Below, piece by piece: positions 14,053-64,000 of a stretch of 64,000 nucleotides of DNA (position 1 is its first letter; each line of letters begins with the position of its first letter). This stretch comes from Zootoca vivipara (lineage: Eukaryota): positions 41,974,001-42,038,000 of the forward strand of contig NC_083288.1 of assembly GCF_963506605.1 (NCBI RefSeq). Direction: 5' to 3'. The notes under the pieces were generated by a model, which saw only the letters and a list, made by a program, of their open reading frames with translations, had not been told where the DNA came from and did no database searches. A program made the position numbers and the translations under genes.

Positions 14053-14619
14053 AAAGAGCAAGTGAAACGAACAAGGCTGATGGGGGGAGACCTGAAACAA
14101 ATTTTCTAATCATTTCCCCCCCTTCATACAGAAACCATCATGTTCTCCAGATGTTGCCAGACTACAACTCCCCTTATCACTGACCATGTTGGCTGGGACT
14201 GATGGGAGTTGGAGTTGAATAATATTTAAAGGGCATCTCATTGACTATAGTTGTTCTATTTCTGTTATAGTATTTGTGGTGATATGCCTGTTGTCTTTGA
14301 CCATGGAGTTTTCTTGGCAGGGATACTGGAGTGGCTTGCAAGTTCCTTCTCCAGGTGATAGATGCCTTGGGGTTTAAGGATTTTAGGGGTAGGTTTTGAT
14401 TATTTCACAATATTGTCAATTGTCTCTTGTCAAGCACAGAAGAAGGGCTGGCCCTACCATTAGGCAAAATGAGGCAACTGCTTCAGGTGGCCAACTAAAT
14501 CCAGATGATGATGATGATGATTATAATGATGGGAGGTGGTAGCAGCACCTATCAGTTATCTCCCTGCTCTGGAGATCAAAGCAATGTGTGCCACCCAGCC
14601 TGTCTTGCAAGAGAGAAAG

Positions 14620-16893: not shown

Positions 16894-17029
16894 CAGGCTT
16901 CCCCAAACTTCGGCCCTCCAGATGTTTTGGACTACAATTCCCATCTTCCCTGACTACTGGTCCTGTTAGCTAGGGATCATGGGAGTTGTAGGCCAAAACA
17001 TCTGGAGGGCCGCAGTTTGGGGATGCCTG
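16894..17029. mobile_element. hAT-type MITE
   Basis: TIRs; TSD GTGTAGGC; empty site in paralogue at ~26349. Confidence 0.9.
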
Positions 17030-17054
17030 GTGTAGGCTTTGGTATCCTCTAGAC

Positions 17055-17190
17055 CAGGCATCCCCAAACTGCGGCCCTCCAGATGTTTTGGCCTACAACT
17101 CCCATGATCCCTAGCTAACAGGACCAGTGGTCGGGGAAGATGGGAATTGTAGTCCAAAACATCTGGAGGGCCGAAGTTTGGGGATGCCTG
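17055..17190. mobile_element. hAT-type MITE, inverted relative to neighbour
   Basis: TIRs; TSD CTCTAGAC. Confidence 0.9.
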
Positions 17191-17826
17191 CTCTAGACCA
17201 TATCCTCCAATTGCCAAAAAGATGCAGGGACAACCATGAAAATGTTTAAGCTATTGTGGGACCAGGTTATTTTAAGCAGTATCTTCACCAAATTAAGGCA
17301 GTGCCACCAGGATTTTTGGAAGACTTTATGACCCACCCTATTCCTCTGATAGTAGTATGGTGAATGGTTTATAGGAAATAATTATCATGATCAGTGCAAT
17401 TTTTCTAGAAAAAGAGATGTTGGAACTCACCATGAACACCTCCCTTGTTCTCTTATAATGACAACGGTATCCACCTGAGAGTGGACGGAACTGAGTTCCG
17501 GCAAGTTCCAGCTGAAAAAAAGCCCTGATATGATTATCGTGCTATTATCACTCTACACTGAAGTCATTCATTTACTCAAACCATAGAGGAGATTTATGGG
17601 CTACTACTAAAATGAGGCTGCATTTTAAGCTGCATTTTAAGCTGCATTTTAAGCCGTATTTTAGTTGTTTGTTTGTTTGTTTGTTTGTTTGTTGTTTCTA
17701 TTACGCTTTATTGTAATTCATATTTGGTGTTAGCTGCCAGGGAGGGCGGGGTATAAAAAAAAATATTATTATTAACATTTATTAAATGTGTCATATTTAT
17801 TTATTTCAGTGGATTTACTCTAAATA

Positions 17827-18068
17827 CAGTGGTACCTCTAGTTACAAACTCAATTCATTCTGGAGGTGTGTTCTTAACCTGAAACTGTTCTTAACTAGGG
17901 GCGCAGCTTTCGCTAATGGGGCCTCTTGCTGCCGTTGCGCCGCTGGCACACAATTTCTGTTCTCATCCAGGGGCAAAGTTCTCAACTCAAGGTAACTCTT
18001 CGAGGTTAGCGGAGTTTGTAACCTGAAGCGTTTGTAACCTGAGGTGTTTGTAACTCGACGTACCACTG
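17827..18068. mobile_element. Tc1/mariner (Tigger-like) MITE
   Basis: TA|CAGTGGTACCTC...GTACCACTG|TA. Confidence 0.85.
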
Positions 18069-18212
18069 TAGATTCCCCACCACCACCATTTCTTCCTGTA
18101 GCTCATTTTATGATGTTGTAATGATTTAATTGTATATCACCAAGATATTGTTTAATGAGCTAGCAAATTATAAATAACTAAATAAATCTCTCTCCACACT
18201 TTAGTAGGAAAA

Positions 18213-20110: not shown

Positions 20111-20464
20111 TTATGAATATCATGCTATTATTACTCTACACTGAAATCATTCATTCATTCAAGCCATAAGGAAGTATCTGAAGTTCAATACATTTCTGAG
20201 TATTCCATCATGTGCTAGTTTGGGTTGGTGGGTATAATCATCGAAAACACTAGGTTGGGGCAGGCTGGCATACATTTAATTCATTTAACGAAACTTTATT
20301 ATTACTACCCACATGTACAAACAAGAAGAGCTATTATTTACATTGTGTGTTGAGGTTTAATAAATGAGACAATTAAATGGGGAAGTGACTAGAAAATGGG
20401 ATTGTCAAAATGGGATCATCAATATCTTGAAGGACCACTGAAATAAAAGAAATTGGCTATTGCT

Positions 20465-20634
20465 AACTTTTTTTAATGAGGTCTTCTGGGATCAGTAGAA
20501 GGTGTTTTTTTCTGGGCTCAGTATATTCTTGGATGCACTTCTTCCATAAGCAATATAAATATGAGGATGAGGAAGAGGAAGATTTCTTCTGCCGGAAGGG
20601 CTGTCTGCAAATTGAAGGGCAACAAAGGGTAAGT
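20465..20634 (+). promoter_or_regulatory. OR4N-type promoter/first exon copy 1: homeodomain+O/E composite, TATA-like box, donor
   Basis: AACTTTTTTTAATGAGGTCTTCTGGGA at 20465-20491; TATAAA ~20554; GG|GTAAGT at 20629. Confidence 0.65.
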
Positions 20635-24795: not shown

Positions 24796-26373
24796 TCCCT
24801 CTTCCCAGGATTCATGGGGCACAGGCTAGACAGCACCCTTTTCTTACACTCCAATGAATGTATATATCCAGGTGACCATGGATATTTTAGACCCCATCTT
24901 TTTTCCACAGAGGATACAAAACCTTTATAAAAAACAAAAACATAATAAAAGCAATAAAAGTATTGGTGTTTTGGTCATGTTCTAAAATATGCGTCTTCTT
25001 TGGGGAGTGCCAAGAAGGAGCAAATCCTTTTCCTGTGTACTGCCCCCAGAAAATCATCATGGCACCCCTCCTTACCATACAACCAGTCGATTCCCTTCTC
25101 TGGAGATCAAAGCTGTGTGTGCCTCACAGCCTGTCTTGCAAGAGAGAGGGTCTTAGCTCAGTGAAAGAGCACATAGACACTCCCAGGTTCAACCCCTAGT
25201 CTTGCCAGGAAGTGTATGGATGTCCTGGAGAGCAACAGTCAAACAGTGTAGACAATACTAAGTCAGAATGGCCTGTAGATCTGAGTCAGTACAAGGCAGA
25301 ATCCCATGCTTCTACGCAGTCACTAAACTAGTCCACTGCCATCAGGTACAATAGAGGAGGATACGCCCTCCCCCTTGGCCAAAGTCAACTGCTAGTCCAA
25401 TCAGTTTCATTCGGAGAGAAAGCAAGGCAGAGAGGGACACACAGGGAAACCAGAGAGTGACCTCTATAACCATAAGGTAAGGCTGAAGACCCTGGGATGG
25501 TTAAGTCCAGTCAAAGACCACTATGGGGTTGTGGCGCTCATCTTGCTTCAGGCTGAGGGAGCTGGCATTTGTTCACAGACAACCTTCCATGTCATGTGGC
25601 CAGCATGACTAAATCACTTCTGAAGCAATGGAACACCGTGACAGAAAGAAGAGTGCATGGAATTGCCGTTTAGCTTCCCACTGCAGCCGTACCTTTACTA
25701 TAACCATATTAGGGTTGTTGACTATCCCCATAGGCACCTGATCCCGAAGCAATGGGCTTTGAATTGAGGTTGTCCAGATATTTTGGACTGCAACAACCAT
25801 TACAACACAGCCACGCTTACCTGAACTGATTGGAGTGGTGAATTGAAAATATCTTGAGGACGCCAGGATAGGAAAGGCTGCCTTATAGTGTTTTGACAGT
25901 GGGTCTCTGACTTACATAGTTGTAAAAAAACAACAACACACATTCCAAAATGATATCAACATTCAGTGACTTCCTTCTAAAGGAAATCAAAGCTGAATAA
26001 GTGCTGCACTTCTCAAATTCTCACTACTCAGGGGCATGACGTGATTGTGACAAAATGAAATGAAATGGGACAAGATTTTTATATAAGCATAGTTGAACCA
26101 AGCAGAGACAAAAAAATTCTTACAGGGAGCTGAAGGCATCTGACAGAGGGGTAACTGCTTGTCATATTTTCATCTTTCTGGGGTGCACCCCTTTCCTGTC
26201 CCATTGAGCACATTGGAATCAATCAAGATTAACCGTTCAATCCTATCCATGTCTACCCAGAAGAAACAGGGTAGAACAGAGCCTTGAAATGGCCCTTGTC
26301 ACATCTCAGCTACTCCTATTCCTGGAAAGGAATAGCTTGGCCACGTTGGTGTAGGCTTTCGTATCTTCTAGAC

Positions 26374-26508
26374 CAGGCATCCCCAAACTCAGCCCTCCAG
26401 ATGTTTTGGAACTACAATTCCCATCATCCCTGACCACTGGTCCTGTTAGCTAGGGATGCTGGGAGTTGTAGTCCAAAACGTCTGGAGGCCCGAGTTTGGG
26501 GATGCCTG
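26374..26508. mobile_element. hAT-type MITE
   Basis: TIRs; TSD TTCTAGAC both sides. Confidence 0.9.
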
Positions 26509-27104
26509 TTCTAGACCATATCCTCCAATTGCCAAAAAGATGCAGGGACAACCATGAAAATATTTAAGCCATCACGGGACCAGGTTATTTTAAGCAGTAT
26601 CTTCACCAAATTAAGGCTTTTAGCATAGTGGCACCAGGATTTTGGGAAGACTTTATGACCCACCCTATTCCTCTGATAGTATGGTGAATGGTTTATAGCA
26701 AATAATTATCTTGATCGGTGCAATTTTTCTAGAAAAAGAGATGTTGGAACTCACCATGAACACCTCCCTTGTTCTCTTATAATGACAACGGTGCCCACCT
26801 GAGAATGGACGGAACTGAGTTCCAGCAAGTTCCAGCTGAAAAAAAGCCCTGATATGATTATCGTGCTATTATCACTCTACACTGAAGTCATTCATTTACT
26901 CAAACCATAGAGGAGATTTATGGGCTACTACTAAAATGAGGCTGCATTTTAAGATGTATTTTAAGCCGCGTTTTCATTGTTTGTTTGTTTGTTTGTTTGT
27001 TGTTTGTTTGTTTGTTGTTGTTTCCATTACGCTTTATTGTAATTCATATTTTGTGTTAGCTGCCCTGAGCCCGGCCTTGGCCAGGGAGGGCGGGGTATAA
27101 ATAA

Positions 27105-27151
<47 letters not shown>

Positions 27152-27429
27152 TTTATTTATTTATTAAATGTGTCATGTTTATTTATTTCAGTGGATCTAC
27201 TCTGAGTACAGTGGTACCTCTAGTTACAAACTCAATTCATTCTGGAGGTGCGTTCTTAACCTGAAACTGTTCTTAACTAGGGGCGCGGCTTTCGCTAATG
27301 GGGCCTCTTGCTGCTGGCACACGATTTCGGTTCTCATCCTGGGGCAAAGTTCTCAACTCGAGGTAACTCTTCGAGGTTAGCGGAGTTAGTAACCTGAAGC
27401 ATTTGTAACCTGAGGTGTTTGTAACTGCT

Positions 27430-27591
27430 AACTTTTTTAATGAGGTCCTCTGGGATCAGTGGAAGGTGTTTCTTCTGGGCTCAGTATATCCTTGGATGCA
27501 CTTCTTCCATTAGCAATATAACTATGGGGATGAGGAAGATTTCTTCTGCCAGAAGAGCTGTCTACAAATTGAAGGGCAACAAAGGGTAAGT
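27430..27591 (+). promoter_or_regulatory. OR4N-type promoter/first exon copy 2
   Basis: AACTTTTTTAATGAGGTCCTCTGGGA at 27430-27455; GG|GTAAGT at 27586. Confidence 0.65.
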
Positions 27592-31579: not shown

Positions 31580-33535
31580 ACGAGAGCTCCGTGGAGCGAT
31601 CGAGAGCCAGCGGAGTGGAGTCGCGGGAGCCATTTTTGGGTTTCATCTTACCTCCTTGAAGTGAAGCTCCGAGTCCTCAGCCTGCAAGTGGCGGATTCTT
31701 CCAAGAAAATAAAAGACTTGTACAAAGTAAGTCAAATCTCAATTCGGACCTTAAAAAATTTAAATTTGAAGATAGGAAGAGATTTTAAAGCAACGGAAGC
31801 CGATCTCTTCCAAATGGTAAATCGGGAGGCGTATTAAATATTCCTGAGCTGAAAAGGGAAAAAGTTCTTTTTTAGATTGTGGACCCGAGAGAAAGAAAGA
31901 CTTTTCCAAACCTTCCTAGCCCCCGGTGTCAATACCCCTTGAGGTTCAGCAGCAATAAGGGGAAGGACGTTTTGACAGCTGTCAAATGCTGTCAAACTGC
32001 TATAGGATTAAAAAAATTGATTTTATTGCTGTGGACTGTAAAAACTGATTGAAGAGGATTTAGAAGTAATTTAAGTGGAATTTAAATCTGAAATCTAATG
32101 AAGTCTAAGACAAAGGATAAGATCAGCCAAGATGGAGCCGACAACGTGGTAGAGAGGAATTTTCCAGCATTCTTTGGCCCTTATCTCTGGCCTGCCTGTG
32201 GTTAAGTTAACTATGAAAACAAGGTTTTCTCAAGCCTTCCAGGAGGCTGTGTTGAACTATCTACAAACATGGGAAGATATTTACAAGGAACGGCAATGCC
32301 TAAATCCAACAGAAATGGTGAATGAGGTGCAAGATCAAGATTTAGAGGACAATTTTGATGCTGAGACTGTGTGTGAGAAGCAACAATTTGAGGATAACTT
32401 TGAGACTGATTTGGACTCAAAAAAACATGTGTTGGATGATGAAAAACAAAAATTTGAACAAAGAGATGAGGCCGACAAGGAGAAGCAAAGTGAAGAGAAG
32501 ATTGATGAAAATGGAAATCCTGGAAAGACTGAAATGTGGAGTGGTGTTAGTGAAGGGAGGGATAGGCAGGAAGAGGGGCGTGCAAAGGTCTGGAAGTGGA
32601 TGTGGGAAAGGACTGGTGTGGGGTGAAAATTTTAGTTTAAGGTTTTTTTTTTCTGTGTTGATGAATAACGGTGTCTGAATCTTGGCCTGCTAAATGGTAT
32701 GCTGATCCAATGGGGGGAAGGGACATTGGGAGGGGGGGAAAAAGAGATTTTTTTAAAAAAAAAAAGTTTAGGGTTAATAGTTTTCTGGAGGGGTAAAAGA
32801 ATGGCCTGGGAAACATGTTAAAGTTTGTTTTTAATGTTCTTGGTGACTAGAGATGGGTCTGGGTAGAGAACTGCCTGTCTCCCTCTCTCTACTCTTGGCA
32901 TCCAGTGACAGGGGGTGTATGGAGGGGGGAGGGAGGGGTGGAAGGAAACCCAGACTCAAAAATGGAACCTTTTGACTGCTGAACCCCTCGGGTCACCCTA
33001 GTGGCAGGAGGGGACTCGGAGGGGGGCAGCATGAAGAAGGAGGAGGATTGAGTTAATATAATAAGAATTAGATTTTGAATTAGATTAGGAAACTCGCCAA
33101 AATTAATTGAAGAAGCTAGGAATTCCAGGAGGAAGAGANNNNNNNNNNNNNNNNNNNNNNNNNNNNNNNNNNNNNNNNNNNNNNNNNNNNNNNNNNNNNN
33201 NNNNNNNNNNNNNNNNNNNNNNNNNNNNNNNNNNNNNNNNNNNNNNNNNNNNNNNNNNNNNNNNNNNNNNNNNNNATTAGCTGGGGGATAAGCCAAACCC
33301 CAGAGCTCCTCCGCCTCTGTCCTCTCAGTGGCAGGGGGGGGGATGAGGGGGGAGGAAGGAGGGGGGAGGTTAAACCCAGCCTAAAAATGGACCCCTTTGT
33401 TTCTCAATGCCCATGGGTATCACTGGTGGCAGAAGTGGTCTTGTGGGTGGAGGGAAAATGAAGGGACAGAATTTATGGTATATGTTGTGTATGTGTTGTC
33501 TTTATAAAATCAATAAAATATTATATATATAAAAA
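31580..33535 (+). mobile_element. Unclassified non-autonomous retroposon inserted in L1
   Basis: 18-bp TSD AGGAATATAAGGGCAGAT (31562-79, 33536-53); CpG-rich 5' end; AATAAA plus A tail; no RT; spans the gap. Confidence 0.75.
33139..33275. other. Assembly gap (N run)
   Basis: 137 N. Confidence 1.
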
Positions 33536-34436
33536 AGGAATATAAGGGCAGATGAAACAATTAGAGGAATCAAAGTAGGCAATAAAACCTACAATTTGAA
33601 AGCATTTGCGGATGATTTGGTAATCATGGTGGAAGAACCAATGAATTCTTTAGTGAAAGTATTAGGAAAAATACATCACTTTGGCCAAGTGTCAGGTTTT
33701 AAACTGAATAAAAGTAAAACCAAACTAATAGAGCAAAATAAACAAGAGATACAAGAGAGGATAGGAATAAATATTCATTAAAAAGTGAAATATTTGGGGA
33801 TATGGCTAACAACAAAGAATAGTAATATATTTAAAGATAACTATGAAAAAACATGGAAAGAAATAAAAAGAAATTTGGAGATTTGGGGAAGAATGAATAT
33901 GTCACTGTTAGGAAGGATATCGGTAATTAAAATGAATGTGCTGCCAAAAATGCTATTTTTATTTCAATCAATTCTGGTGATTAGCAATGTTAATTGCTTC
34001 AAAGAATGGCAGAAAGACATTTCAAGATTCATCTGGAGAGGGAAGAAGCCAAGAATAAAGTATAAATGATTAGCAGACAATAAAGATAGAGGAGGCTTCT
34101 CTCTACCAGATTTTAAATTATATTATGAAGCTTCTTGCATTTGCTGGATCTGGGATTAGACAACATTTTTTTAAAAATATGGATCTATTGGATTTAGGAC
34201 ATGATAATAGATTTGGCTGTCATACGTATTTATGGTATCAAATGACAAAAATACATAAACATTTTCATAATCATATAATAAGAAAGGCGATTTTTAAAGT
34301 TTTTGGAGAAATATATGGATTTGTTAGAACAAAAAGCATCTTGGTGGCTTTCCCCATTGGAAGCAATATTGGTTAAAAAGTTAAATATGGAAACCAATTG
34401 GGTAACATATAGAGTTGTTTATTGAAATGGATAACC

Positions 34437-37872: not shown

Positions 37873-38065
37873 TATGCATCATAAAATTAATTCCTGTACA
37901 AAAAAGGAGAGCTATTATTTATTATTTTCAGTGTTTAGGTTTTTGTTTTTTAAAAAAAGAGAGACAATTAATCAGGGAAGTGACTAGAAAATGGGATTGT
38001 CAAACCACATGCTGATCCTCAATATCTTTGAAGCACCACTGAAATAAAAGAAATTGGCTTTTGCT

Positions 38066-38227
38066 AACTTTTTTAATGAGGTCCTCTGGGATCAGTGGAA
38101 GGTGTTTCTTCTGGGCTCACTATATCCTTGGATGCACTTCTTCCATAAGCAATATAAATATGAGGATGAGGAAGATTTCTTCTGCCGGAAGGGCTGTCTG
38201 CAAATTGAAGGGCAACAAAGGGTAAAT
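38066..38227 (+). promoter_or_regulatory. OR4N-type promoter/first exon copy 3 (of pseudogene)
   Basis: AACTTTTTTAATGAGGTCCTCTGGGA at 38066-38091; donor weakened to GTAAAT at 38222. Confidence 0.6.
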
Positions 38228-39517
38228 GTTTGCCTCATCTCTGCTCTTTTTTACATTGTCTTTTTGCATGGCTTGAGTTTTCCTCCCTTGCTCCTCTACT
38301 GATCATTCAGCTCACTTTGGATAGCAGTTGATGGAAGCCATAGGAGGGGAGAGTGCTGTTGTCCTGCTTGCTGGCATCTGGTGGGCCACACTGAGAAGAA
38401 GATGCTGCACTGGCCTGATCCTGCAGGCTCTTCTTATGTGCTTAACTTCCTTGCTAATCACTACTAAGGAAGCAAAGAGAACTTGGAGGAGGGGTCTGGT
38501 GGAGGATCAGAATGGGAGGCATAGAAGGAATTTGTATTAAAATGATGCTTGATTTTGATTAGAGCTCTTTTTAAAACAATTATCAAACTGATTTTGAAAA
38601 GTGGGGAGTGGAATTTAAGATAGGGAAAATGAGAAACCAAGAAACCAAAAATGACAAATCCTTCTGTCCCTACTCTGTCCCGAGCCCTGCAAGAATGGCA
38701 AGCATTACCATTTAGGCAAAGTGATGAAGCTGCCTCAGGTGGCAGATGCTGGGTGGGAAATGTGGAGGACAGAATTGGGTGTGCCATATTGCTTGCACTT
38801 TGCCTCCTAAGCTGGTTGTAGTTGATGTGTAGTTGAGGATTCTCTGGTATCAAAGCAAAGTTAAGTTGCCAGTTTTGTCAGCAGCTGTGTGTAGTATTGG
38901 GGGAGGGGGGCACCATCTTATTCATCTCTTCAGGCAGCAAAAGGTTTTCATCCAGATCTCACCATTCTATCATGGTCTTGAGAATCTCTGTGGTTGGAGG
39001 AACAAAGGTTTAGGGTCCACCACCACCAACAGCAGCAGCAGTACTGGATCTCAGTCTTCTTAGCCTTAGATTTGGGGAATGGGCCATAACTCAGTGGTAA
39101 TCTGTTTTGCCCTTCCAGGCTCAATCCATTTGGATAAGTCAAGTACATGTGTCAAATGATAGTTGTGTTATGGTTTGCTTATTGGTTCTGAAATTGCAAA
39201 TGTAATTGATTTGGCTTTAACTGCACACTGAACTGAAATTCTCCACTTCACTCTCAGTGACATCTTCAGATCACAGAGGACTCTATGTGACTCATCTCCT
39301 GGGTTTAGTTTTCTGGACATTTTTTAGCCCTCCAGTCCAGATGGACCACCTATCACTGAGACATCTAACCCATACAGTGCTGGTAGGCAATCATCATTTC
39401 TCTGTGGAAAAGCCACAGAATCTGAATGTAAGCTTAACTTGTGAGCTACTTTGATCTACTTCTGGCCAGCCTACCAAATGGTTCCATTTATAACAAGGTG
39501 TATAAAAAGGAGCAGAG

Positions 39518-39834
39518 GTGGCCTGGTAAGTGCTGCATGTTTCATCCTCCTCCTCATCTCTTATGGGGCACTGCTAATAAAGGTGAGGACAAGCTCAAGC
39601 TGTGAAAAGAACAAAGCCTCATCTACGTGCATCACCCACATCATCATTGCCTGCATCATGTTTGCTCCAGCCATCTACATCAACTGCCATCCCTTCCAGG
39701 ACTATCCCTTTGACAAGGTGGTGGCCTTTTTCCACACCATGGTCTTCCCTCTGATGAATCCCATGATCTACACACTGAGGAACAAGGAGATAAAAGTTGC
39801 TATGTGGAGACTGATGAAGAAATATAAAAATTAG
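39518..39834 (+). pseudogene. OR4N-like pseudogene lacking acceptor, ATG and first ~202 codons
   Basis: Intron sequence AGCAGAGGTG fused to TM5 sequence GCCTGGTAAG; 672 bp missing relative to 30058-30729. Confidence 0.95.
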
Positions 39835-40340
39835 TGATTTTGCAATCAGTCCCTCTTCCCAAGATTCATGGGGCTCAGGGTTTTCATGGATGTGTAGATC
39901 TTATGCAAATAGGGTAGACATCATCGCTTTCTGACACTCCAATGAATTTATATTGGAGAACATGGATACTGTTTTGTGTTCCTTGTAGGAACCATGGTAT
40001 TAACATGACAAAAATCATAAATATCATATATAAATATTGCCAAATAAAAAATGCCCCTCTTTTTTCACCGAGAGAGCAAAACCTTTATTTTAAAAAATAA
40101 AAACAATCAATCTCCTTGGGGAATGTAGCAGAGGAGAAAATCCATATCCTGTGTACTGCCCCCAGAAAATCATCATGGTGCCCCCTCCTTACCATACTTT
40201 CCTACGCATGTTTATGCAAATATATTTACTTCCCAATAACTGTACTTAGGATTGCAAAATGGGGTTGTCAGCCACAAGCTTCTAATCAACATCCTCGAAG
40301 TAGCCTTGAAGTATTGAAAATAAATGAAAAAGAAGTTTGG

Positions 40341-40521
40341 TTTTTAATAAGGCCCTTGGTAGCCTGTGGATGAGGTGTACCCAAGGGTCTAGCTTATCCT
40401 TTGATACACACCTCCCCACCTTCAGCTCTCCCAGGGCCAGAAGTAAGATAGCTAGGGAGGATGAGGAGACCTTCTGCTGCCTCAAGGGCTGTCATACACT
40501 TGGTGGCAGCAAGGGGTAAGT
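40341..40521 (+). promoter_or_regulatory. Promoter/first exon of OR at 42816
   Basis: TTTTTAATAAGGCCCTTGGTA composite, further O/E-like CCCAAGGG and TCCCAGGG, donor GG|GTAAGT at 40516; aligns with 47659-47843. Confidence 0.6.
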
Positions 40522-47185: not shown

Positions 47186-47658
47186 CAGAAGACTGATCAA
47201 AAGTAGATGAGAGAAATTAACAATAATGCAACAATCATGTCAGCGAAAGCCAGGGATTATTCAGTCTCTAGTGTTGTTGGGCAAATGTTAACTCAGGGGT
47301 AGGAAACCTCTGTCCCATGGGTCAACCTTGTTCCTCCAGGGAGTCCAAGATGACTCATGAGGCCATCTTCTGCAAACCACACCCACTTGTCCATCATCTT
47401 ATGTACTTGGGTGACATCACCTGATGAGTGGAACAGTGGGGTTCAATCCTGTTGGTGGTCTGCTTTGTCAGCATATTGCCTGAAGATTCAAGGGGCAGCA
47501 CGAGCTATTTGAAATCCCTGTTTTAAACAGCCCCATGCTACTTTTGAACCTCCAAAAACTGATAATTTATAGGACTTCCAAACAGCCCCACATTGTACTT
47601 TGAAGTCCTGGCAGTTGAAGCTTCACAGCTGATTTTTCAATAAAGCCCTTGGTGCTAT

Positions 47659-47843
47659 CTTTTTAATAAGGTCCTTGGGAGGCAATGGAAGGAGCTGCTC
47701 CTAAGGGCCCTGGATGTCCTTGAATAGGCAACTTCTTCTCCCCACTTTTGGCTCTCCTAGGGCCAGAAGCAATATAGCCATGGAGATGGATGAGGGAGTC
47801 TAGGGGTGCCTCAAGGACTGCCAGAAAATTAAGGAAGGTAATT
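47659..47843 (+). promoter_or_regulatory. Promoter/first exon of OR at 49580
   Basis: CTTTTTAATAAGGTCCTTGGGAG composite; CTCCTAAGGG and CTCCTAGGG O/E-like sites; AG|GTAATT donor at 47838. Confidence 0.6.
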
Positions 47844-49579: not shown

Positions 49580-50524
49580 ATGGAAAATGGGACTCATACA
49601 GTAGTGGTCGAGTTTGTTCTCCAGGGAATATCACAGATCTGGTTGGTGCAGCTGTTCCTCTGTACCCTACTCCTGCTCTTCTATGCCATCATCCTACCTG
49701 GAAATGTCCTCATCATTATGACAATTAGGCATGACCCCCATTTGGGATCCCCCATGTTTTTCCTCTTGGCCAACCTGGCTTTCATGGACATCTGCTACAG
49801 CTGTGTCACAACTCCGAAGATCATAGCCAACTTCTTGGCTGGCTGCAGAACCATCTCCTACAGAGGCTGCATGGCTCAGCTTTTTTTCATTCATTTCCTT
49901 GGTGGGGCAGAGATCATTCTCCTTATTTCCATGGCTGTGGATCGCTATGTGGCCATCTGCCACCCACTGCACTATGTCACTGTGGTGACAAGGGTGGTTT
50001 GCTGGGCTATGCTGCTGTGTGCATGGGCTGCAGGTTTCATACACTCCATGATACAAGTCATTCTCATTGCCCCACTGCCTTTTTGTGGCCCCAATGAGTT
50101 GGACAACTTCTTTTGTGACATCACCCAGATCATCAAGCTGGCTTGCACCAACACTTATACATTAGAGTTTGTCATGTTTGTCAACAGTGGTTTGGTCACA
50201 ATTGCATCTTTCCTCCTCCTCCTCATCTCTTATTTGGCCCTCCTTGTCAAGGTGAGGAAGGGCTCAAGCCAAGGAAAGAAGAAAGCCTCCTCTACATGCA
50301 TCACCCACATCATCATTATCTTCATTATGTTTGGCCCAGCTATCTATATCTATTGCCGTCCTTTCCAGGACCACCCGTTTGACAAGGTGGTGGCCTTTTT
50401 CCACACTGTGATCTTCCCTGTGATGAACCCCATGATCTATACACTGAGGAACAAGGAGATCAAAGTTGCTATGTGGAAACTGCTGAAAAAAATATACCAA
50501 AATCTCCAGACAAGTGAAAGATAA
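49580..50524 (+). CDS. Olfactory receptor, family 4 (OR4N/OR4M-like), 314 aa
   Basis: NGT site, PMFFLLANLA, MAVDRYVAICHPLHY, KASSTCITH, PVMNPMIYTLRNKE. Confidence 0.97.
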   Translation: MENGTHTVVVEFVLQGISQIWLVQLFLCTLLLLFYAIILPGNVLIIMTIRHDPHLGSPMFFLLANLAFMDICYSCVTTPKIIANFLAGCRTISYRGCMAQLFFIHFLGGAEIILLISMAVDRYVAICHPLHYVTVVTRVVCWAMLLCAWAAGFIHSMIQVILIAPLPFCGPNELDNFFCDITQIIKLACTNTYTLEFVMFVNSGLVTIASFLLLLISYLALLVKVRKGSSQGKKKASSTCITHIIIIFIMFGPAIYIYCRPFQDHPFDKVVAFFHTVIFPVMNPMIYTLRNKEIKVAMWKLLKKIYQNLQTSER

Positions 50525-51772: not shown

Positions 51773-54049
51773 TAACACTTTTATTGTCTAAAAGTAACTA
51801 TACAACAGCCCTAACAAACTTACTGCTGCAGATCATATTTGTGCACCAGTCCTTCTGCCCTAGTCCTAGTTTCATTTTCCATGTCATACCATATAAGCCA
51901 TTGCCTCTCTGTTCAGGATCACCTGTCACCACATTTAATCTAAACTACAAGTCACACAAACATATTTTAACAGCTTCCCATCCTTGAGGTGGTGAGTGGA
52001 TGATCAGTCACCTCTAATAACACCTGGGGACTATTCTGCCCCATTACTGGTTGCTATTTCTATCTAAACAATTAATAATCTCTGTATTGTGCAGGTTTCC
52101 TATTCACCCCGCCTCTAGAGGTGACCACCTCCATGTTCAAAGATGGGAAGCAAGCTTCTATAGGTGGTTTCTGGGCCTGGGCTTCTGTTGATGTTCCAAG
52201 ATCTTGGCATGTTGACAAGCTTTGCTCTTTTGATTGTATGGTTCAACATAATTCTGACATAAGTTGCATATGTCTTCTGCTCCTTCTAAATGGGCAGCAA
52301 GGCCTATAAAGGTTGCCAATTTCTCCACCAGCACATGAACGTGACCCGTCTTACAGTCTTCAAGCATGTGGCTGGTGAAGAGGGTGGCCAGCATGGCATG
52401 GTGGAACTAGCCATCATGTTCTCACAACCACCTCAGATGTGCTTTTGATATCTGAAGAAGTGTGTCTTCATCCCCCTGTGTATACAAAGCTGCATGTGAA
52501 GCTTTATAGACAAGTTCTAAAAAGGAAGTTCTACAGGAAAGGCGGCTTTCTCTCTCCACATGCATTCATTCTGTCCTTGATTAATGTATGGAAAAGGACT
52601 ATATGTTGAATCTCAGTGTGGGAACCTCTGGTTGCCTGATTATGGAGTTAGCTCCCTATCTCTCTGCTCAGCCTGCTTTGCAAGGCAGACGATGATATGT
52701 TTTAATTTCCTTAAATCTTTAAGCACAAACATATTATACTGCATGGGAAGATCCATAGTAACACATAACAATTATCCATACGGTAGTTGCATATTGTTTG
52801 CCAACTTCATGGTGTAATAACTAATAGCTTGCCAAAGTAATCACACATTAAGGCTGGGCAAGACTTGGTGTGGTATTCAACTAGTTTGAGCAGATCCATT
52901 GAAATTAATGAGCATGATTAAGTAAAGTCCATTACTTGCAACAGGTCTACTCTGAGTAAAATATAGTTGGATGCCACATGTGAAGCCAATCCGCTCCATT
53001 CCTTCATGTGTACACTATAGTCCATCTGTGGACTCTACTTCCTTTACTCTTCATAATGAAGAGTGTTTCTAATAAATAAACTTGTATGACAATTCTCCAT
53101 CATCTAATCTATTTCTTATGCCACTTTGTTATGGATATGCAGGTGGAGACTGCAGTGGGTCCCCATAGTATTAAGGTTACACACAAGGCAAAGTGTTGGT
53201 AACTTTTGAAAGCCTAATAAGATACTACCTGAAAGGCATGGACAATGTTCATCTACACTTCTTGATCCCGTCATCCAATAATGTCTAGTCAGGTACATGT
53301 TATGAGTCATTGCACTGAGTTAGGGTTACCATATTTTGAAGAGCAAAAAAGAGGACTCTATAACGACTCTTATTTTAAATACCTCTGTTATATGTAGGCT
53401 ATAGAAGCTGTGATATATTGCTGAGGGGGGCAGGAGAAGAGAAGAAGAAAGCAAGTCTTCAGCCACCAGTTATGCCTATGTCTCATCCAGAAATTATAGC
53501 CAAAGACATTTTTGCAAATTTAAAAAATCCATCCGGACAAAAAGTTTACCCCTAAAAAAGAGGATATGTCCTGGAAAAAGAGGACACATGGCAACCCTAA
53601 CTGAGCAGACAGATTCACACCATACATTTAAAGCACATTCAGCACACATCTACAGCACATGGCTTCCCCCAAAGAATCCTGAGAACTGTAGTTTGTTATG
53701 GATGATAGGAACTGTAGCTCTGTGAGGTGGAACTAGAGCTCCCAGGAAGCTACTACAGTATGTACTTTAAACCTGAAGAAATGTGAGCTTTGCATTCAAG
53801 TTTAATTCTAGTTTTTACATCATCATCATCAGGCTGGGAGAACCGCCAGGTTTGCAAAAATACAACAATAAAATGCAAAATAACCTTAGGGGAAGGCACC
53901 CCCCCAAAAAAACCCCCCACATAACTCTGCTGATTAAGTACTGAGCATGTTCACCAGCCTAGGGGTTCTAAATTCCTTTTTGAGTGGAAAGGGGAAGGAA
54001 TGGAATATCCTGAAGTAAGGCATGGCTAGTTGAAACAGTGCACAAATGG

Positions 54050-54390
54050 TTGTAAATTTTTCTCCATGGACACGCTCTTCTGCCTTATTCCTTGGATAAA
54101 TGGTTGTTGGACTAGGGCCCAGATCAAGGCCTACTGCTTCACCATTTCCAATCCCATCCCAGAGTTCACCTGCACTTTCTCCATCTGATTCACTATGCAA
54201 ACTTTTTAATGAGCTCCCTGAAGACTGATAGCTGGGGTGTCTCTGCCTTGAGTCTCTTGAGCTCTTACTATGGCAGCTTCCAGTATCTGTGTGCCAAGGC
54301 CTTTAGATGAGCAGGGAAGTATTTTGTTATTCCCAAAGAGGAAAAGAATGTGACCCTTTTCACTGCCCTTTACCCCAGAGGAAGAATAAG
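54050..54390. promoter_or_regulatory. Candidate OR enhancer or distal promoter with exact H/P-element 13-mer
   Basis: AACTTTTTAATGA at 54200-54212 followed by GCTCCCTGAAG; several more O/E-like sites within 200 bp. Confidence 0.55.
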
Positions 54391-55149
54391 GAATTGGTTC
54401 TTTTTTTCTTTCCTTCCTTACAATGTTCAGATTTTAGTTATTATTTTTTCAGGTTGCAGGGCTAGATCTTCAACAATCAAAAGCATTTTGTCCTCACTCA
54501 CACATCCCTGATCACACATACATTATGTGTTAACTCATGTGTAAGCCCATGCTGCCACAGAGGTGTGATATGAGCAAGATCTTGGGCCCACAGTTTTGCC
54601 ACAAGGCAGGGGTGTTCAGCTATGTTAGTCAGAGATGAAACAATGAGAAAACAAAGAAAGCCAGGCAAGCTGTTGATCATTATCGTTCTGTTTGCAAGCA
54701 GACTCCCACTGACCATGCAAGGAGAAGAAGGGACCAGAACAAAAGCATGTTAGAATTTTTTAACCCTCAGATAGTACCCACCCTTGTAACAGAAAAGCTA
54801 CCCCCAAAATGGCAGAGAAAAGGGTTGTACCTGTAAATCAGGACACACTCAGATTTCATGTTTCTCCAGCATATTTACGAGTCTGTTAATCAAGATGCTT
54901 GACAATACCTTTTTCCAAACCAGTTTGAGATACCCTTTGAAACAGTGAATACATTGACTCCAGAATCCATTTTCAAGCACCTGTTTATTCATACATTGAT
55001 ACCGGTAGCTGCTCTTTGGGCAAATCTGTGGGGATAGTTATCAATACTTGTTAAACCAGAGGGGAAGCTTGGGAAGGATTTCCTGCTATGTGGCTGGAGG
55101 AGTCTCAGTGCTGACTAGGGGTTAAACATGACTGTTGTATTGCTCTCTG

Positions 55150-56000
55150 TTTACAGCTCAGGCTTTACTGGTAAAGCAGGTTCTCTCCATAGGAGAGAGC
55201 ATGGGTTGCGGCTGGGCTAACAAGACGACCCAGGGCCTTGGGGGGTGGGTCTGATATTTGGCTTTGATTGGTGGTTTAATTGTTGCTGGGGATTTTTTCC
55301 TTGTTGCAATTTGATGATTGACAGCCCTTGCTTGGTTTAAGCTGAAGGAGCAGTTTGTGCTACCTCTTTGCTGCTTGCTTCGAATCTCCCGCCCACCCTC
55401 CGCTTCATTTAGGCCCCTTTGCTTGACCTTGCAGTGCCTGTCTAGGTGGTCGCCTGTATTCAGGGGCCTGGTAGGAATTTTGCCATTTGACTGATTGGCT
55501 GGTGTCAGGTGGTTTTTGCCTACCATGCTGCAATTAGTCACAACTTGTAAGGTTGCGGTTAGTCATTGGTTCAAATAATTGGTCGAGGGGTACGGATTTT
55601 GGCTGGGCCTGACCCTCATGTGATTGCTGCTGCCATATAGAAGTATTCCGTTAAAGGAATCCGGGGCTCCACATGTTTGTCTGTTTATCCCCGCTAGGGG
55701 TCAGGACCACGCATGAGCCTCGGGGAGCATCTGGGGAGAGGACAAAGAAGGGCTTGTGCCCCCTGCCCTGTCCTCTCTCAGGGGGTGCTGACTTACTGAC
55801 TCCCCTACTAGGCTAGAGGGAGTCAGATCTGTCCCAGGCGGGAGACAGATGGCTGGGAACCAATGACTAAGCAACCACTCACATTTAATTGATTGTATTT
55901 TAATAAAAAAGTTGTGGCCAAATTTTAATGCCAAAAACCTTAACAAAATTATGGTGTCTGTGTGAGTTATTGGGGGGTCCTCTTGGTGCCTCGGCACGCA
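55150..56000. mobile_element. Unclassified interspersed repeat
   Basis: GC/CpG-elevated block with AATAAA near its right end; termini and TSD not resolved. Confidence 0.35.
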
Positions 56001-56285
56001 AAAAATGATATTTCATTAATTTTTCCATAACAGTTACAAGCTGGTCACTGAGGATATGTGCACCATATATTTTTAAAAGTACATTTAACACACATTTCTC
56101 CCCTCAAAGAATAATGGACCCTGTAGAACAGGGAATAGGTTACTGAGAGCTATAGCTCTGTGAGGTGTAACAGTGCCCCAAATTATTTGTGGGAAACAAT
56201 GTGCTTTGAATGTACTTTAAAGGTATAGTGTGTATGTAGCCAGAGTCCCCATTAAAGTTAAAGATAAATTGGCATATTATTATTA

Positions 56286-56640
56286 AAAGGTAAAGGGACC
56301 CCTGACCATTAGGTCCAGTCGTGACCGACTCTGGGGTTGCGGCGCTCATCTCGTGTTATTGGCTGAGGGAGCCGGCGTACAGCTTCAAGGTCATGTGGCC
56401 AGCATGACAAAGCCGCTTCTGGCAAACCAGAGCAGCACACACAGAAATGCTGTTTACCTTCCCGCTGTAGTGGTACCTATTTATCCACTTGCACTTTGAC
56501 GTGCTTTCGAATTGCTAGGTTGGCAGGAGCTGGGACCGAGCAACAGGAGCTCACCCCTTTGCAGGGATACGAACCACTGACCTTCTGATCAGCAAGCCCT
56601 AGGCTCTGTTGTTTAACCCACAGCACCACCCGTGTCCCCT
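56286..56640 (-). mobile_element. Sauria SINE, full length
   Basis: Same sequence as 22393-22742; inserted in an ATT-repeat target. Confidence 0.92.
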
Positions 56641-57164
56641 ATTATTATTACAAAGCATCAAAATGGCATCAGAAAGTCAAATGGCTGTCACAGGGCTTAT
56701 GGAAGCCTGGACTGTGTAAAATGTGTGGGTCTGGGATTACACATCTTTTCTCTCCTCCAAAAATAATCATTTGTTGTTGTTGTTGTTGTTTAGTCGTGTC
56801 CGACTCTTCGTGACATACTCTTGGAGAAACAAAACTCTGATCTACATAGATCTTCAAGATAAGATTCTGGAGGCAGAACATGGAATCATTTAAATGTAGT
56901 GGTCCAGTATTTTTTGATATAGTTTTAATGGAAGGGCAACAATGATTCCCCATTTCCCCATTTGTGAATTTCTGCCTGAAAATGGTTTAAGGCTAGGCAC
57001 ATATTCAGAGCAGTGAACATTTGATCCACCACTCAGAGGTCAGTATTTTGGGTACATGGGTACCTGCATGTTTCTAGTGACATATGTAACAGGGTTGCCA
57101 GATCACCTGAGCACCTGGGTAATGATATAGCCACAAAATGTCTTGATAATATTAATATGATATA

Positions 57165-57230
57165 CTTCCTTCCTTCCTTCCTTCCTTCCTTCCTTCCTTC
57201 CTTCCTTCCTTCCTTCCTTCCTTCCTTCCT
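57165..57230. repeat. (TTCC)n microsatellite
   Basis: Direct observation. Confidence 0.95.
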
Positions 57231-57309
57231 GATTAATAGAACTGGAGATTATTCAATTGGTTGAGTGCACACACATAGTTCAGAGATTACCCTGTTTTTG
57301 ATCCCTTGC

Positions 57310-58340
57310 CACCTACCCAAGAAACCAAATGAGAAGTCAAACCAACCAACGATGCACCCCTGAGGACAGCTGTGTGTCACATCCCTTAGTGATAAAGTAT
57401 TGTTTTCTTCTCTAGCACCATTGGAGCAGATAACACACAACTAATGCAGTCAAGCAGATATATCATCCAAATAGATATTGTCATCCACACACCAGCCACA
57501 GGCAGAGGAAGGAACTGGATCAAGCAGCTCCATGCTGATGATGATCAGGACAGAAGAAGTTGCTGTAGCAACCTCAAGGAATTTCTGTTGGATTTTGGAG
57601 GTGGGTGAGAAACCATTTGAGGATGTATTGCATTTTTCCAGAAGGCAGGTGGAAAACAATGGGAGGAATGACATATTGCAAACATCTCCAAAGAGCTCTC
57701 CAGCCATTTCCATCAACTAATCTTCCCTTTCCCATTCTCTAACTTCACATGCCTTTTGGTGGATAGACTGCTGAGGAACACTGGAGTAGTGTGAAGACTG
57801 GTCAATATTATTATCATGTAATTGTCCATCCAGAACACTGGAGACTACATAATATACCCAGTTTCTGATATGGCATGCCTCTAAGAGGTCTACTGCACTC
57901 GTGTTATATTTGTGGGTTTCCTCTAGGCATTGGTTAACCATGGCAGAATACTCACCTTGCCACAGTCTGATCTGTAATAGAATAGTCCCAGGATGCTTTC
58001 AGTAGACTGAGGTTTGGGCAGTTGTGTTCCTTGCTAAGTGAGAATATAAGAATGTGAGAAATTAGAACTGTCATTCTACATCAGTCAGCAACTGCATACC
58101 CATGGCAGTTTGTTCAATTTTCCTGGTGTTTCCCTGTTGATTTCTGCATGTAATTGGAGCTTTCACATGACATAAAAGCCACTTCAAGAACTATAGAGGA
58201 ATATAGTGAATATTGAGTGCTCATTTCCGTATTAGTTGCAAATGATTTTTTTTCCCTCTGGAAAGGAATAACATGGAAACTAGGACTAAACAGCACTATG
58301 GTTCTGGAAGTGATATTTGTAAAATATCATGTGAATGCAG
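57310..58340 (+). repeat. Non-coding block paralogous to 62825-64000 (upstream region of OR4K-like genes)
   Basis: Collinear anchors GAAGTCAAACCAA, GGAGCAGATAA, GGCAGAGGAAG, ACAGAAGAAG, GAGCTTTCAC. Confidence 0.8.
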
Positions 58341-58866
58341 AAATCAACAGTTCGAGAAATGGGGAAATGGAATAAACTGTAGTGTGATTGCAGCTTGTGA
58401 CATCAGGCTGAGCACTCTGACTTCTTATGGTGACTAACCAGGTGTTTCTTTGGAAAGGAAACACAAAATAGGGGAAGATAATGCATCTGGCCTATTAATA
58501 ATTAAATCAGAGCAACACACAATTTTAAGGTAAGTCTTTGCACGACAAAAAAGAAGTGGATACAGTTCAGTAATGAACATAGACAATGAATCTATCATAT
58601 CCACCTCTCTGTGTGTGCACATTCCTGTGATGCAGTCTCAGTCAAACCCCCTGCCGGTGAAGCTGATGCTAAATGAAACCACTGCGTAAGGGCACATGGC
58701 AGCTACCACTTTCTTCTCCATGGGCTCCTCTGTGTGGTAACTTCTCCTTGGAATCTTCTCTAATCTCCTTCTGCAGATCTGGAGTACCCAAATGGGTAGT
58801 TCTTCAGATATTCCACAAATTTAGATTGTATTTTGGAAAGTGGTCTGCTTCTTAGGAAGATAGATA

Positions 58867-59110
58867 CAGTGGTACCTCTACTTACGAATTTAATGCGTTC
58901 CGAACACACATTTGTAAGTCGGAAAAAATTGTAAGTCGAATCCCATAGGAATGCATTGGGAGAAAAAAATTGTAAGTCGAAGCAACCCTATCTAAATATT
59001 CATAAGTAGAAAAAAATCCTATCTAAACAGCATCCAAGATGGCCGATGGAGCTCCATTCGTAAGTAGAAACATTCGTAAGTAGAGTTATTCGTAAGTAGA
59101 GGTACCACTG
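58867..59110. mobile_element. Tc1/mariner (Tigger-like) MITE
   Basis: TA|CAGTGGTACCTCTACTTACGAAT...ATTCGTAAGTAGAGGTACCACTG|TA. Confidence 0.92.
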
Positions 59111-59194
59111 TAGTTGGAAAGGTGATGATGATGATGATGATGATGTGTGTGTTGTAGGACAATATATTTTAGAGGAGCTGCATTGATGGGGAAG

Positions 59195-59385
59195 GGCCAT
59201 AGCTCACTAGTAGAGCATCTGCTTTCCATTAAGAAGATCCCAGGTGCAATCCCTGGCAACTCCAAGTAGGAGTGTGAATTTTCTCCTCTAAAACTCTGAA
59301 AAACCACTGCCAGTCAGTGTAAACTATACTGAGCTATATGAACTAATGGTCTGACTCAATATAAGGCACCTTGCTGTTTTCCTAA
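59195..59385 (+). mobile_element. tRNA-derived SINE (Squam3-like)
   Basis: GGGCCATAGCTCACTAGTAGAGCATCTGC head; CACTGCCAGTCAGTGTA body. Confidence 0.75.
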
Positions 59386-59716
59386 AAGAGGTGTGTGTTT
59401 GCACCACAGCCCTTCAGATATCTGTTGAATTAGATTGGACAATGGTCAGGGGTAAGGAGCTGGACTCTGCAGAGCCGCAGGTTCTCAACTCCTGGTGCAG
59501 ATAATACTGAGTTGGATAGAGGAATGGACTTAGTATATGTCATCTTCCTATGTTCCTATGGATAATGTATGAACAATTAGGACTGGGGTCCCAGGACCCA
59601 GTCAAGAATAATGGCAGCTGACACATAGCTACACCCTTTGCTAAGGCTATAATGGAAGTATCTCATTACCACCTTTTTCTCTCTTTCCAGTTTTTACAGT
59701 GATTTGCAAGAAGACA

Positions 59717-60676
59717 ATGGCATGGGGAAACCAGACAATGGTGAATGAGTTTGTCCTTCTGGGCCTCTCTGAAATTTGGGAGGTCCAATTGGTCTTCTTT
59801 ATCGTCTTCCTCCTCCTCTACGTGGCTACTTTCTTCATCAACATTCTCATCCTCTCAGCTATTTTCAGATGTCGCCATCTTTCAGACTCACCCATGTTCT
59901 TTCTCCTGGGTCATTTGGCTTTCCTGGACCTCTGCCTGTCCTCCTTTGCCACTCCAAGATCTCTTTTTGATTTCCTCGCCCAACACCATGTCATTTCCTT
60001 CCATGGTTGCATGGCACAAATCTTTTTTCTTCATCTCTTTGGGGGCAGTGAGATGCTCCTGCTGATAGCCATGGCCTATGACCGGTATGTGGCCATCTCC
60101 CACCCTCTCCATTATGCCACACTCATGAATCGGCGGCGATGCATGGGGCTTGTGCTAGCCTGCTGGACTGGTGGGCTCCTCCACACCACTGTGCAATTGG
60201 TTTTTACAATTAATGCACTTTTCTGTGGACCCAATCTTGTGCACAATTTCTTCTGTGACATCCCCTTTGTCATTAAGTTGGCCTGCACTGACACATACCT
60301 CCTGGAAGTCATGATGGTCACCAACAGTGGCATTATGTCACTAATGTCTTTTGTTGCTCTGCTTCTCTCATATGGATTCATTCTTTATACCATCTGCTCT
60401 ATGCCCCACTCTAAAAGGACCACAAAGACTGCTTCCACATGTACCTCTCACCTCATTGTGGTTACCATGTACTTTGGGCCAATTATGTTTATTTACCTGC
60501 AGCCATACAGTCAATTCATGGCCGATAAAGTGCTCTGCATCTTCTACACCTGTTTCACCCCCTTGCTGAACCCAACTATCTATGCTTTGAAGAACAAGGA
60601 GATGAAGGTTGCTATGGGAAGTCTGCTGGCAAGGCTTTCTGGGAAGGTTTCCACTCAAGGCCAGCCCTATCATTAG
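59717..60676 (+). CDS. Olfactory receptor, family 4 (OR4K/OR4F-like), 319 aa
   Basis: NQT site, SPMFFLLGHLAFLDLCLSSFATP, MAYDRYVAISHPLHY, STCTSH, PLLNPTIYALKNKEM; acceptors ending 59690 and 59699. Confidence 0.95.
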   Translation: MAWGNQTMVNEFVLLGLSEIWEVQLVFFIVFLLLYVATFFINILILSAIFRCRHLSDSPMFFLLGHLAFLDLCLSSFATPRSLFDFLAQHHVISFHGCMAQIFFLHLFGGSEMLLLIAMAYDRYVAISHPLHYATLMNRRRCMGLVLACWTGGLLHTTVQLVFTINALFCGPNLVHNFFCDIPFVIKLACTDTYLLEVMMVTNSGIMSLMSFVALLLSYGFILYTICSMPHSKRTTKTASTCTSHLIVVTMYFGPIMFIYLQPYSQFMADKVLCIFYTCFTPLLNPTIYALKNKEMKVAMGSLLARLSGKVSTQGQPYH

Positions 60677-62696: not shown

Positions 62697-62993
62697 TTTT
62701 TCTCCTCCTCCCCTAATTAGAGGTGGATATCATTCCATTCAGATAGGTGGTAGAATCACACACATTTGGGACAGGGAGAGAAAATCACACCCCTATTTAC
62801 CCTCCTTTTTTTAAATCTCCTACCATCTACCCAGAAAACCAAACCTGAAGTCAAACCAAGGCACAATGCAGCCTTGAGGGCAGCTGCATAAATCTTGCTT
62901 TAGTGACAAAAGTATTACTTTCCTCCCTCTTGCTCTGTAAGAGCAGATAAGGCACTAACTAAAGCAGCCCCCTTTGGGGGGGATGAGCAATTA

Positions 62994-62996
<3 letters not shown>

Positions 62997-63037
<41 letters not shown>
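62997..63037. repeat. (CA)n microsatellite
   Basis: Direct observation. Confidence 0.95.
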
Positions 63038-63038
<1 letters not shown>

Positions 63039-64000
63039 CACTGTCTCTTGATTTGCTCTTTAGCCTGCCTTTCAAGCAGAGATCACATCCACACAGATAA
63101 CTCATCCCCACACCACTCATAGGCAGAGGAAGAAACTGAATCAAACAGTGCCATGCTGATGCTGAACTGAACAGAAGAAGCTGCTCCAGAAAACTTCAAA
63201 GAATCTCTGCTGGGATTTGCAGGTGATATAGACCATTTGAGGGGGTGTTAGGTTTGTCCAAACACAAGTGCCTTTGGGAAGAATGACACGTTGCAGACTC
63301 CTTCAAGGAGCTCTTCAGCAGTTTCTGCCACCTAAACTTCTCATTTCCAACTCCAGCACCGCACATGTCTTTTGGTGGTTGAATTACTGATGGAATATGG
63401 GGCAACATGGGAACTGGTCAGCATTGTTGTGACATACTCATTCATCCAGAAGACTGGAGAATATGTATTACATTGAGTACTGGGGCGACATGCCTCTGAT
63501 TGTTAGGGAACAGCAGCGGGAGAGGGCTTATTGTATTAATGTCCTTTTTGTGGGTTTCCTATAGGTGCCATCAAAAGGCAAAACACTCAGTGATATGGGC
63601 ACAGCCTGGTCAATAATGGTTTGGGTCCAGCATGTTGTTGGAATCCTTAGGTTGGGGAACTGGTGTTCTTTGCAAAGTGAAATATAAGATCTTAAGAAAT
63701 CAGAGCTACCATTTCAGATCAGACTGTGGCTTGTATATGCATGTTTATTCCACTTTCCCAACAGTTCCCTAACTGTTATTTTTTACATTACATTTGAGCT
63801 TTCACGTGATGCAAAATCCACTTTCAAAATAATAGAGAAATATAGCATAGGTTTAGCACTTATTTCAATACTATTTCCAATGATTCCCCCATGTCCCCGG
63901 CAGCAAATAACATAGAAATTAGCACTAAAGTTTGTGCCATATTCTAGTGTAGGTCTGAAAGTGCCTTTTGCATTGTATGAAAACTCAAAGATAATGTGAA

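Follow-up and report, generated by a model that had tools for sequence, protein, structure and literature searches.

The closest described systems come from mouse, where olfactory receptor (OR) promoters carry homeodomain and O/E sites (PMC5318403). The 13-mer AACTTTTTAATGA is known there as the "extended homeodomain sequence", found in the class II OR elements H and P and in the P3 promoter, as a preliminary description of the present locus had correctly stated; in that species it is thus active in a promoter as well as in enhancers (PMC7804114). The core H, P and J elements combine several homeodomain sites with an O/E site within 190-330 bp, and the HD1 site of the J element is described as distinct from, yet cooperating with, a composite motif (PMC7804114). 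The 21-mer ACATAACTTTTTAATGAGTCT has been multimerized as the x21 gene-choice enhancer (bioRxiv 10.1101/2021.09.28.462154; PMC8213819). Greek Islands are marked by adjacent Lhx2 and Ebf sites in fixed register (PMC5608512), again in line with the preliminary description, and the same laboratory later wrote the composite as WWAHDRRBHHHHNDRDD with a 1-bp spacer (PMC11643329). About half of the mouse Greek Islands have just one strong composite, several have no separate Ebf motif, and 63 islands stand against more than 1000 OR genes (PMC5608512). Composites are reported to be depleted from mouse OR promoters (PMC5608512, PMC11643329). Our literature search found no reptile OR promoter or enhancer. 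Homeodomain plus O/E control of OR genes is of a known kind, and what is new here is the exact mouse word in a squamate cluster.

The window that we analyzed is a 64,000-nt stretch of the Zootoca vivipara genome (NC_083288.1, positions 41,974,001 to 42,038,000), numbered from its first letter. It is an OR cluster lying entirely on the plus strand and made up of seven intact OR genes plus a truncated one. The last OR gene finds its best protein match in Podarcis muralis "olfactory receptor 4K3-like" (93% identity), with other lacertids at ~75-78%; orthologues were identified in Podarcis, Lacerta and Zootoca. The preliminary description had singled out an interval between the last two OR genes as a candidate lizard OR-choice enhancer or distal promoter, and its features are as follows.

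54050..54390, no strand assigned: flagged interval, unique sequence without a further homeodomain core and with O/E-like words only at chance level
54200..54212, plus strand: extended homeodomain 13-mer AACTTTTTAATGA, exact; with the next G it makes the 14-mer common to the mouse x21 unit
54207..54224, plus strand: composite-type site TAATGAG-C-TCCCTGAAGA, consisting of homeodomain core, 1-bp spacer and O/E-like 10-mer

The 13-mer is indeed exact, on the plus strand, and directly followed on its 3′ side by GCTCCCTGAAG, and it lies 3.68 kb 3′ of the stop of OR 49580-50524 and 5.5 kb 5′ of OR ORF 59699 (ATG 59717), in agreement with the 3.7 and 5.5 kb given earlier. By composition, the exact word is expected 0.007-0.009 times per window. 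The 10-mer TCCCTGAAGA is O/E-like with 6/8 matches, its TCCC half being perfect and its AAGA half weak (GGGA in the consensus). The sequence TAATGAGCTCCCTGAAG at 54207-54223 fits the published composite pattern WWAHDRRBHHHHNDRDD with the 1-bp spacer, in the register of the five module sites described below; run with fuzznuc, this pattern is very degenerate and gives 203 matches in the window versus ~146 by chance. Among TAATKR sites, only ~3-5% are in the composite register, and the exact 13-mer and the register are jointly expected ~3e-4 times per window, a figure to be read with the composite criterion having been applied after the fact and many OR-cluster windows having been scanned, so that meeting the exact 13-mer once in some OR cluster would be no great surprise. 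Across the window, neither a stringent form of the composite pattern (9 versus 8.6 expected) nor TTTAATGA (7 versus 5.1 expected) is enriched.

Around the composite, further sites are scarce. The 341 bp of the flagged interval hold one TAAT/ATTA versus a mean of 3.3 for that length, and the nearest others are at 53933 and 54440. Three O/E-like sites reach 6/8 against TCCCNNGGGA (54061, 54215 and 54373), a number matched by 9% of sliding windows, and none within 54050-54390 reaches 7/8. The five further O/E-like words listed in the preliminary description are all where it placed them, but their number is at chance level and they add nothing. The interval therefore contains one good composite site and not a motif cluster.

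The non-repetitive look of the region held up, as self-BLAST found no other copy of 54050-54390 in the window, TRF no tandem repeat and Rfam no match. Three RNA-seq runs from this species, of unstated tissue, were also mapped over 54000-59999, together with one small run. Depth was 0 on 54000-54999 and equally 0 on the OR coding exon, and these runs are hence uninformative about olfactory transcription and about a start site. High depth was confined to two stretches, 56286-56640 and 58865-59150, both of them interspersed repeats of high copy number; about six more copies of the first, 75-91% identical, lie elsewhere in the window, and the reads on both show many variants and loose ends, i.e. 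transcription from many loci. Zero depth at the site while true repeats pile up argues against a young high-copy repeat there, and with self-BLAST, TRF and Rfam also leaving 54.0-55.0 kb clean, a repeat or transposon origin was rejected; an old low-copy element may have given rise to this sequence. A separate stretch, 55200-55999, has low coverage, with the first mate mostly on the minus strand and fixed differences from the window. Its reads probably come from a related copy elsewhere or from an unannotated transcript, and its two minus-strand ORFs have no Pfam match. A hidden gene in 50.6-59.6 kb was rejected as well: tblastn found no OR remnant between 54.2 and 59.7 kb, and no Pfam match was obtained for the 8 of 14 ORFs of at least 70 aa that were scanned in 50.6-59.65 kb.

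The main new fact beyond the preliminary description is that the word is not unique to 54.2 kb. TTTTAATRAGBYCC has five copies in the window, all on the gene (plus) strand, versus 0.01 expected; four of them, together with a one-mismatch copy at 20472, head conserved modules, and the fifth is the 54.2-kb site. Likewise, TTTAATGAGNTCC with at most one mismatch is present in six copies, all on the plus strand, versus 0.55 expected. Apart from the matches at 54205 and 58889, the copies of the word head five mutually homologous modules, at 20472, 27436, 38072, 40342 and 47662. The match at 58889 (TTTAATGCGTTCC) was set aside as spurious, since it lies within the high-copy repeat 58865-59150 and cannot be aligned with the others. 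A one-mismatch form of the 13-mer, CACTTTTTAATGA at 33775-33787 on the minus strand, sits in AT-rich DNA with no O/E-like site after it and was treated as a chance match; it is ~500 bp from an N run (33139-33275). The five modules, termed B-type, are these.

20461..20634, plus strand: module of OR 23845 (ATG 23872), with CTAACTTTTTTTAATGAGGTCTTCTGGGA, TATA-like AATATAAATA and donor AGG/GTAAGT at 20629
27426..27591, plus strand: module of OR 30093 (ATG 30120), with TGCTAACTTTTTTAATGAGGTCCTCTGGGA (O/E 7/8), a TATA-like box and donor AGG/GTAAGT at 27586
38062..38227, plus strand: module of the truncated OR pseudogene 39487-39879, with a composite identical to that of 27426 and a degraded donor, GTAAAT (38222)
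40330..40521, plus strand: module of OR 42789 (ATG 42816), with TTTTTAATAAGGCCCTTGGTA and donor GGG/GTAAGT at 40516
47630..47843, plus strand: module of OR 49580, with composite-like sites at 47638 and 47664 (CTTTTTAATAAGGTCCTTGGGA), TATA-like AATATAG and donor AAG/GTAATT at 47838

Homology among the modules is strong, as nhmmer recovered all five at E values of 7e-24 to 2e-97. Every copy of a single OR subfamily, five in all, has one of them 1.4-3.4 kb upstream; the four intact members (23845, 30093, 42789 and 49580) are 77-95% identical in protein and the fifth is the truncated 39487-39879. The parts of the modules follow a constant order: a T-run, TAAT[G/A]AGG and an O/E-like 10-mer (TCCTCTGGGA matching 7/8), then a TATA-like AGCAATATA[A/G] ~80 bp past the composite and a splice donor ~65 bp further on. 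In intact modules the donors score 7.7-10 on a heuristic matrix at about +150, and in each coding exon of the subfamily an AG acceptor precedes the ATG by 16-20 nt. With a composite, a TATA-like box and a GTAAGT-type donor in each, the modules look like OR proximal promoters with a short 5′ non-coding exon, an anatomy that agrees with the homeodomain and O/E content of mouse OR promoters. Homology extends over 150-250 bp downstream of the composite and, between module lineages, starts exactly at it. The composite is also the most conserved 20-column block, with 15/20 columns identical across three module lineages versus 30% overall. This conservation suggests that the word is under selection in this lizard, where the motif appears to be real regulatory vocabulary.

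Several local features of the modules and of the other genes in the cluster may be recorded here. The pseudogene 39487-39879 has lost ~630 bp of the 5′ part of its coding sequence, and the composite of its module is intact. At 47638-47660, a second composite-like site (GATTTTTCAATAAAGCCCTTGGTGC) stands 26 bp upstream of the main one, as if the motif had been duplicated locally in tandem. Position 27426 is the junction of two duplicated segments: 26347-27426 is homologous to 17028-18055, upstream of OR 18213, and the sequence from 27426 onward is homologous to 20461 and 38062, with the breakpoint exactly at the 5′ edge of the composite. In the two ORs of the other subfamily (10811 and 18213), TTTAATGA is found at 10760-10767 and 18151-18158, 50-60 bp before the ATG, and is followed by a TATAAATA-like run, an arrangement suggestive of a promoter immediately next to the coding exon. 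Of the seven TTTAATGA copies in the window, six share the strand of the genes, and of these, five lie just 5′ of OR coding exons or within promoter-like modules. A block of ~0.6-2.3 kb is present in three copies (100-700, 4500-5100 and 13620-14220) of 66-73% identity; 7/8 O/E-like sites occur in two of them (230 and 4688) and the donor-like sequence GA/GTGAGTAAG in all three, and the block may represent an upstream exon of the 10811/18213 subfamily.

Compared with the modules, the 54.2-kb copy has the same strand and register (TGCAAACTTTTTAATGAGCTCCC versus TGCTAACTTTTTTAATGAGGTCCT), and the closest pair of sequences is TGCTAACTTTTTTAATGAGGTCC in a module and TGCAAACTTTTTAATGAGCTCC at 54.2 kb. 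In a weight matrix built from the five module sites alone, 54207 is the top non-module match on both strands of the window. The likeness ends with the word. Unlike the modules, the 54.2-kb copy has no downstream homology, no TATA-like box, no GTAAGT-type donor above background and no OR coding exon 1.4-3.4 kb downstream. A whole-window nhmmer search with the modules did not find it, and a module search limited to 54000-54600 aligned only a 46-bp core at 5.4 bits; the BLAST similarity of the site to the module core is not significant (E = 3.4). Alignments of the flanks of 54207 with module flanks are no better than those of shuffled sequences, and one nominally significant flank match was rejected as a low-complexity TTCC run. 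The site as a diverged paralogue of a B-type module was consequently rejected except for the 46-bp core. No TATA-like box is present 80-130 bp downstream of the composite, where all five modules have one. The nearest donor scoring at least 7 on the heuristic matrix is at 54563 (7.3), 358 bp from the site, with a background rate of 1.6 such donors per kb.

The OR gene that follows the site has an upstream region of its own.

57291..58535, plus strand: own upstream block of the OR4K-like gene, of which 57291-58290 is duplicated at 62804-63929
59670..60676, plus strand: OR4K3-like coding exon, with polypyrimidine tract, AG acceptors ending at 59690 and 59699, ATG at 59717 and stop at 60676

In the duplicated part of the block, a TATA-like box near 58045 is conserved and 58253 marks an O/E site matching 7/8; beyond that part come a homeodomain cluster (58494-58506) and the strongest donor of the region, AAG/GTAAGT at 58530. 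Its duplicate at 62804-63929 presumably precedes the next paralogue. As had been described, neither copy of the block includes the 13-mer site, and the module weight matrix found no equivalent site in the paralogous interval 60.7-62.8 kb. On this sequence evidence, OR 59717 would not need the 54.2-kb site.

How the 54.2-kb copy is best read depends on what is made of a word that also sits in promoters, both in the modules here and in mouse P3, and that therefore does not by itself tell an enhancer from a promoter. It might be the proximal promoter of an unannotated 5′ non-coding exon, with transcription starting 50-150 bp past 54207 and splicing over ~5.2 kb to 59690/59699, or the exon might once have served a gene since lost. 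Sibling ORs do have promoter-like modules headed by this word, five in all, on the same strand and 1.4-3.4 kb upstream; the clear acceptors of the coding exon at 59699 imply that an upstream exon is needed, and 5.5 kb would not be unusual for the first intron of an OR gene. Against these points, the site has no TATA-like box at the module-equivalent place, its nearest acceptable donor does not rise above background and lies 358 bp away where intact modules have theirs at about +150, and its flanks have no homology to the modules. The OR4K-like gene, moreover, has its own duplicated block complete with TATA-like box, O/E site, homeodomain cluster and donor, there is no OR remnant between 54.2 and 59.7 kb, and the paralogous 60.7-62.8 kb holds no equivalent site. 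Missing anatomy and the downstream gene's own block thus disfavor a promoter, and we consider the two variants improbable even when taken together; the earlier label of distal promoter is not supported. A similarly low probability attaches to a genuine H/P- or Greek-Island-type OR-choice enhancer that would recruit Lhx2, Ebf and Ldb1 and raise OR choice cluster-wide. Such an element would account for the exact mouse H/P word, the 14-mer held in common with the x21 unit, the fit to the published composite register, the AACTTTTTAAT held in common with the validated Sfaktiria probe, and the intergenic position, which is within an OR cluster but not in the duplicated promoter blocks; a single strong composite would also be no anomaly, given that about half of mouse Greek Islands have just one and several have no separate Ebf motif. 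The H, P and J cores, on the other hand, are multi-site within 190-330 bp, whereas the 341 bp here have one TAAT and no O/E site of at least 7/8, and by the mouse numbers such enhancers are ~20 times rarer in OR clusters than promoters. A single site with a weak O/E part (6/8), among O/E-like words at chance level, disfavors a full enhancer of either type, and the designation as a lizard OR-choice enhancer is not supported in turn.

The site might also have no function at all, being a chance occurrence or a dead remnant in which an AT-rich 13-mer is followed by a coincidental TCCC. Extrapolating the per-base rate to a genome this large predicts 13-mer copies of the order of a hundred or more, and the present one is solitary, with other O/E-like words at chance level, a 6/8 O/E part, no enrichment of TTTAATGA or of the stringent composite in the window, and neither flank homology nor promoter anatomy. 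At the scale of this window, however, pure chance is unlikely: the exact word and the composite register are jointly very rare per window, strand and register match five conserved module sites, and no non-module sequence in the window matches their matrix better. An old neutral relic of a module is also unlikely, as it should not have kept the 24-bp core once all flank similarity had become unrecognizable. We therefore regard absence of function as unlikely, if well short of negligible. Our preference, a tentative one, goes to a solitary Lhx2/Ebf-type composite site that is likely bound and has at most a weak distal effect. The 54.2-kb copy is probably a real solitary site of this type, and 54200-54224 would be a lone copy of the word used at the 5′ edge of the neighboring subfamily's promoter-like modules, in other words an orphan promoter-type site rather than a multi-site H/P or Greek-Island enhancer. 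In olfactory neurons, we infer, it most likely binds the lizard homeodomain factor of Lhx2 type strongly and a factor of Ebf type weakly. Any activity would be that of a weak distal element with one site, serving the OR genes on either side; the mouse 21-mer boosts choice in arrays of 5 or 9 tandem copies, so that a single copy may have little effect.

The five promoter-like modules are a more solid and useful result than the flagged site, and from them the start sites and first exons of lacertid OR genes can be predicted concretely. Should the composite word be functional in this lizard, the Lhx2/Ebf logic of receptor choice would be common to mammals and squamates down to the exact 13-base word, and this small cluster, with five promoter copies and one orphan, would offer a convenient test of how a promoter-type site becomes a stand-alone enhancer. 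A bolder proposal is that the composite grammar predates the mammal-sauropsid split, that in lacertids it sits in OR promoters, which it is reported to avoid in mouse, as well as in the orphan copy, and that this copy is a working reptile OR-choice enhancer derived from, or converged on, a promoter core. All of this holding jointly seems improbable to us; were it true, the locus would be a snapshot of Greek-Island-type enhancers being born from OR promoters.

Set beside the known systems, the 54.2-kb site has 13/13 identity to the word in the mouse P element, H element and P3 (Olfr713) promoter, where it likewise lies in an OR cluster and on the gene strand. In mouse the word is shared between an enhancer, the P element, and the P3 promoter; in the lizard it is shared between promoter-like modules and an intergenic site. 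The H and P elements have extra homeodomain and O/E sites in a core of 190-320 bp and are functionally proven, whereas the lizard locus has one copy and is known from its sequence. Of the features of these elements, it thus has the extended homeodomain site and not the several homeodomain sites in a core of ~200-330 bp; of those of an OR promoter, it has neither the TATA-like box ~100 bp downstream nor homology to sibling promoters. The x21 unit shares 14/14 bases with the 54.2-kb site and is used in mouse as 5 or 9 tandem copies, as against the single copy here. A near-identical extended homeodomain word, HD1 (AAACTTTTAATGA), is found inside the J element, the OR enhancer of mouse class I; the J element differs in that its core of 330 bp contains four homeodomain sites and is conserved between platypus and human, and no such homeodomain cluster exists at 54.2 kb. 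With the Greek Island composite (Monahan et al. 2017), the site has in common the homeodomain core, one intervening base and an Ebf-like site of a pyrimidine run and a purine run, a pattern that is very degenerate and in which the Ebf 3′ half here is AAGA. The 5′ flank AACTTTTTAAT is also common to the validated Sfaktiria probe (...AACTTTTTAATTGATCTCCAAGGAA...). While composites are reportedly depleted from OR promoters in mouse, the best composites of this lizard cluster lie within promoter-like modules, which suggests a possible difference between the two lineages in where this composite is used.
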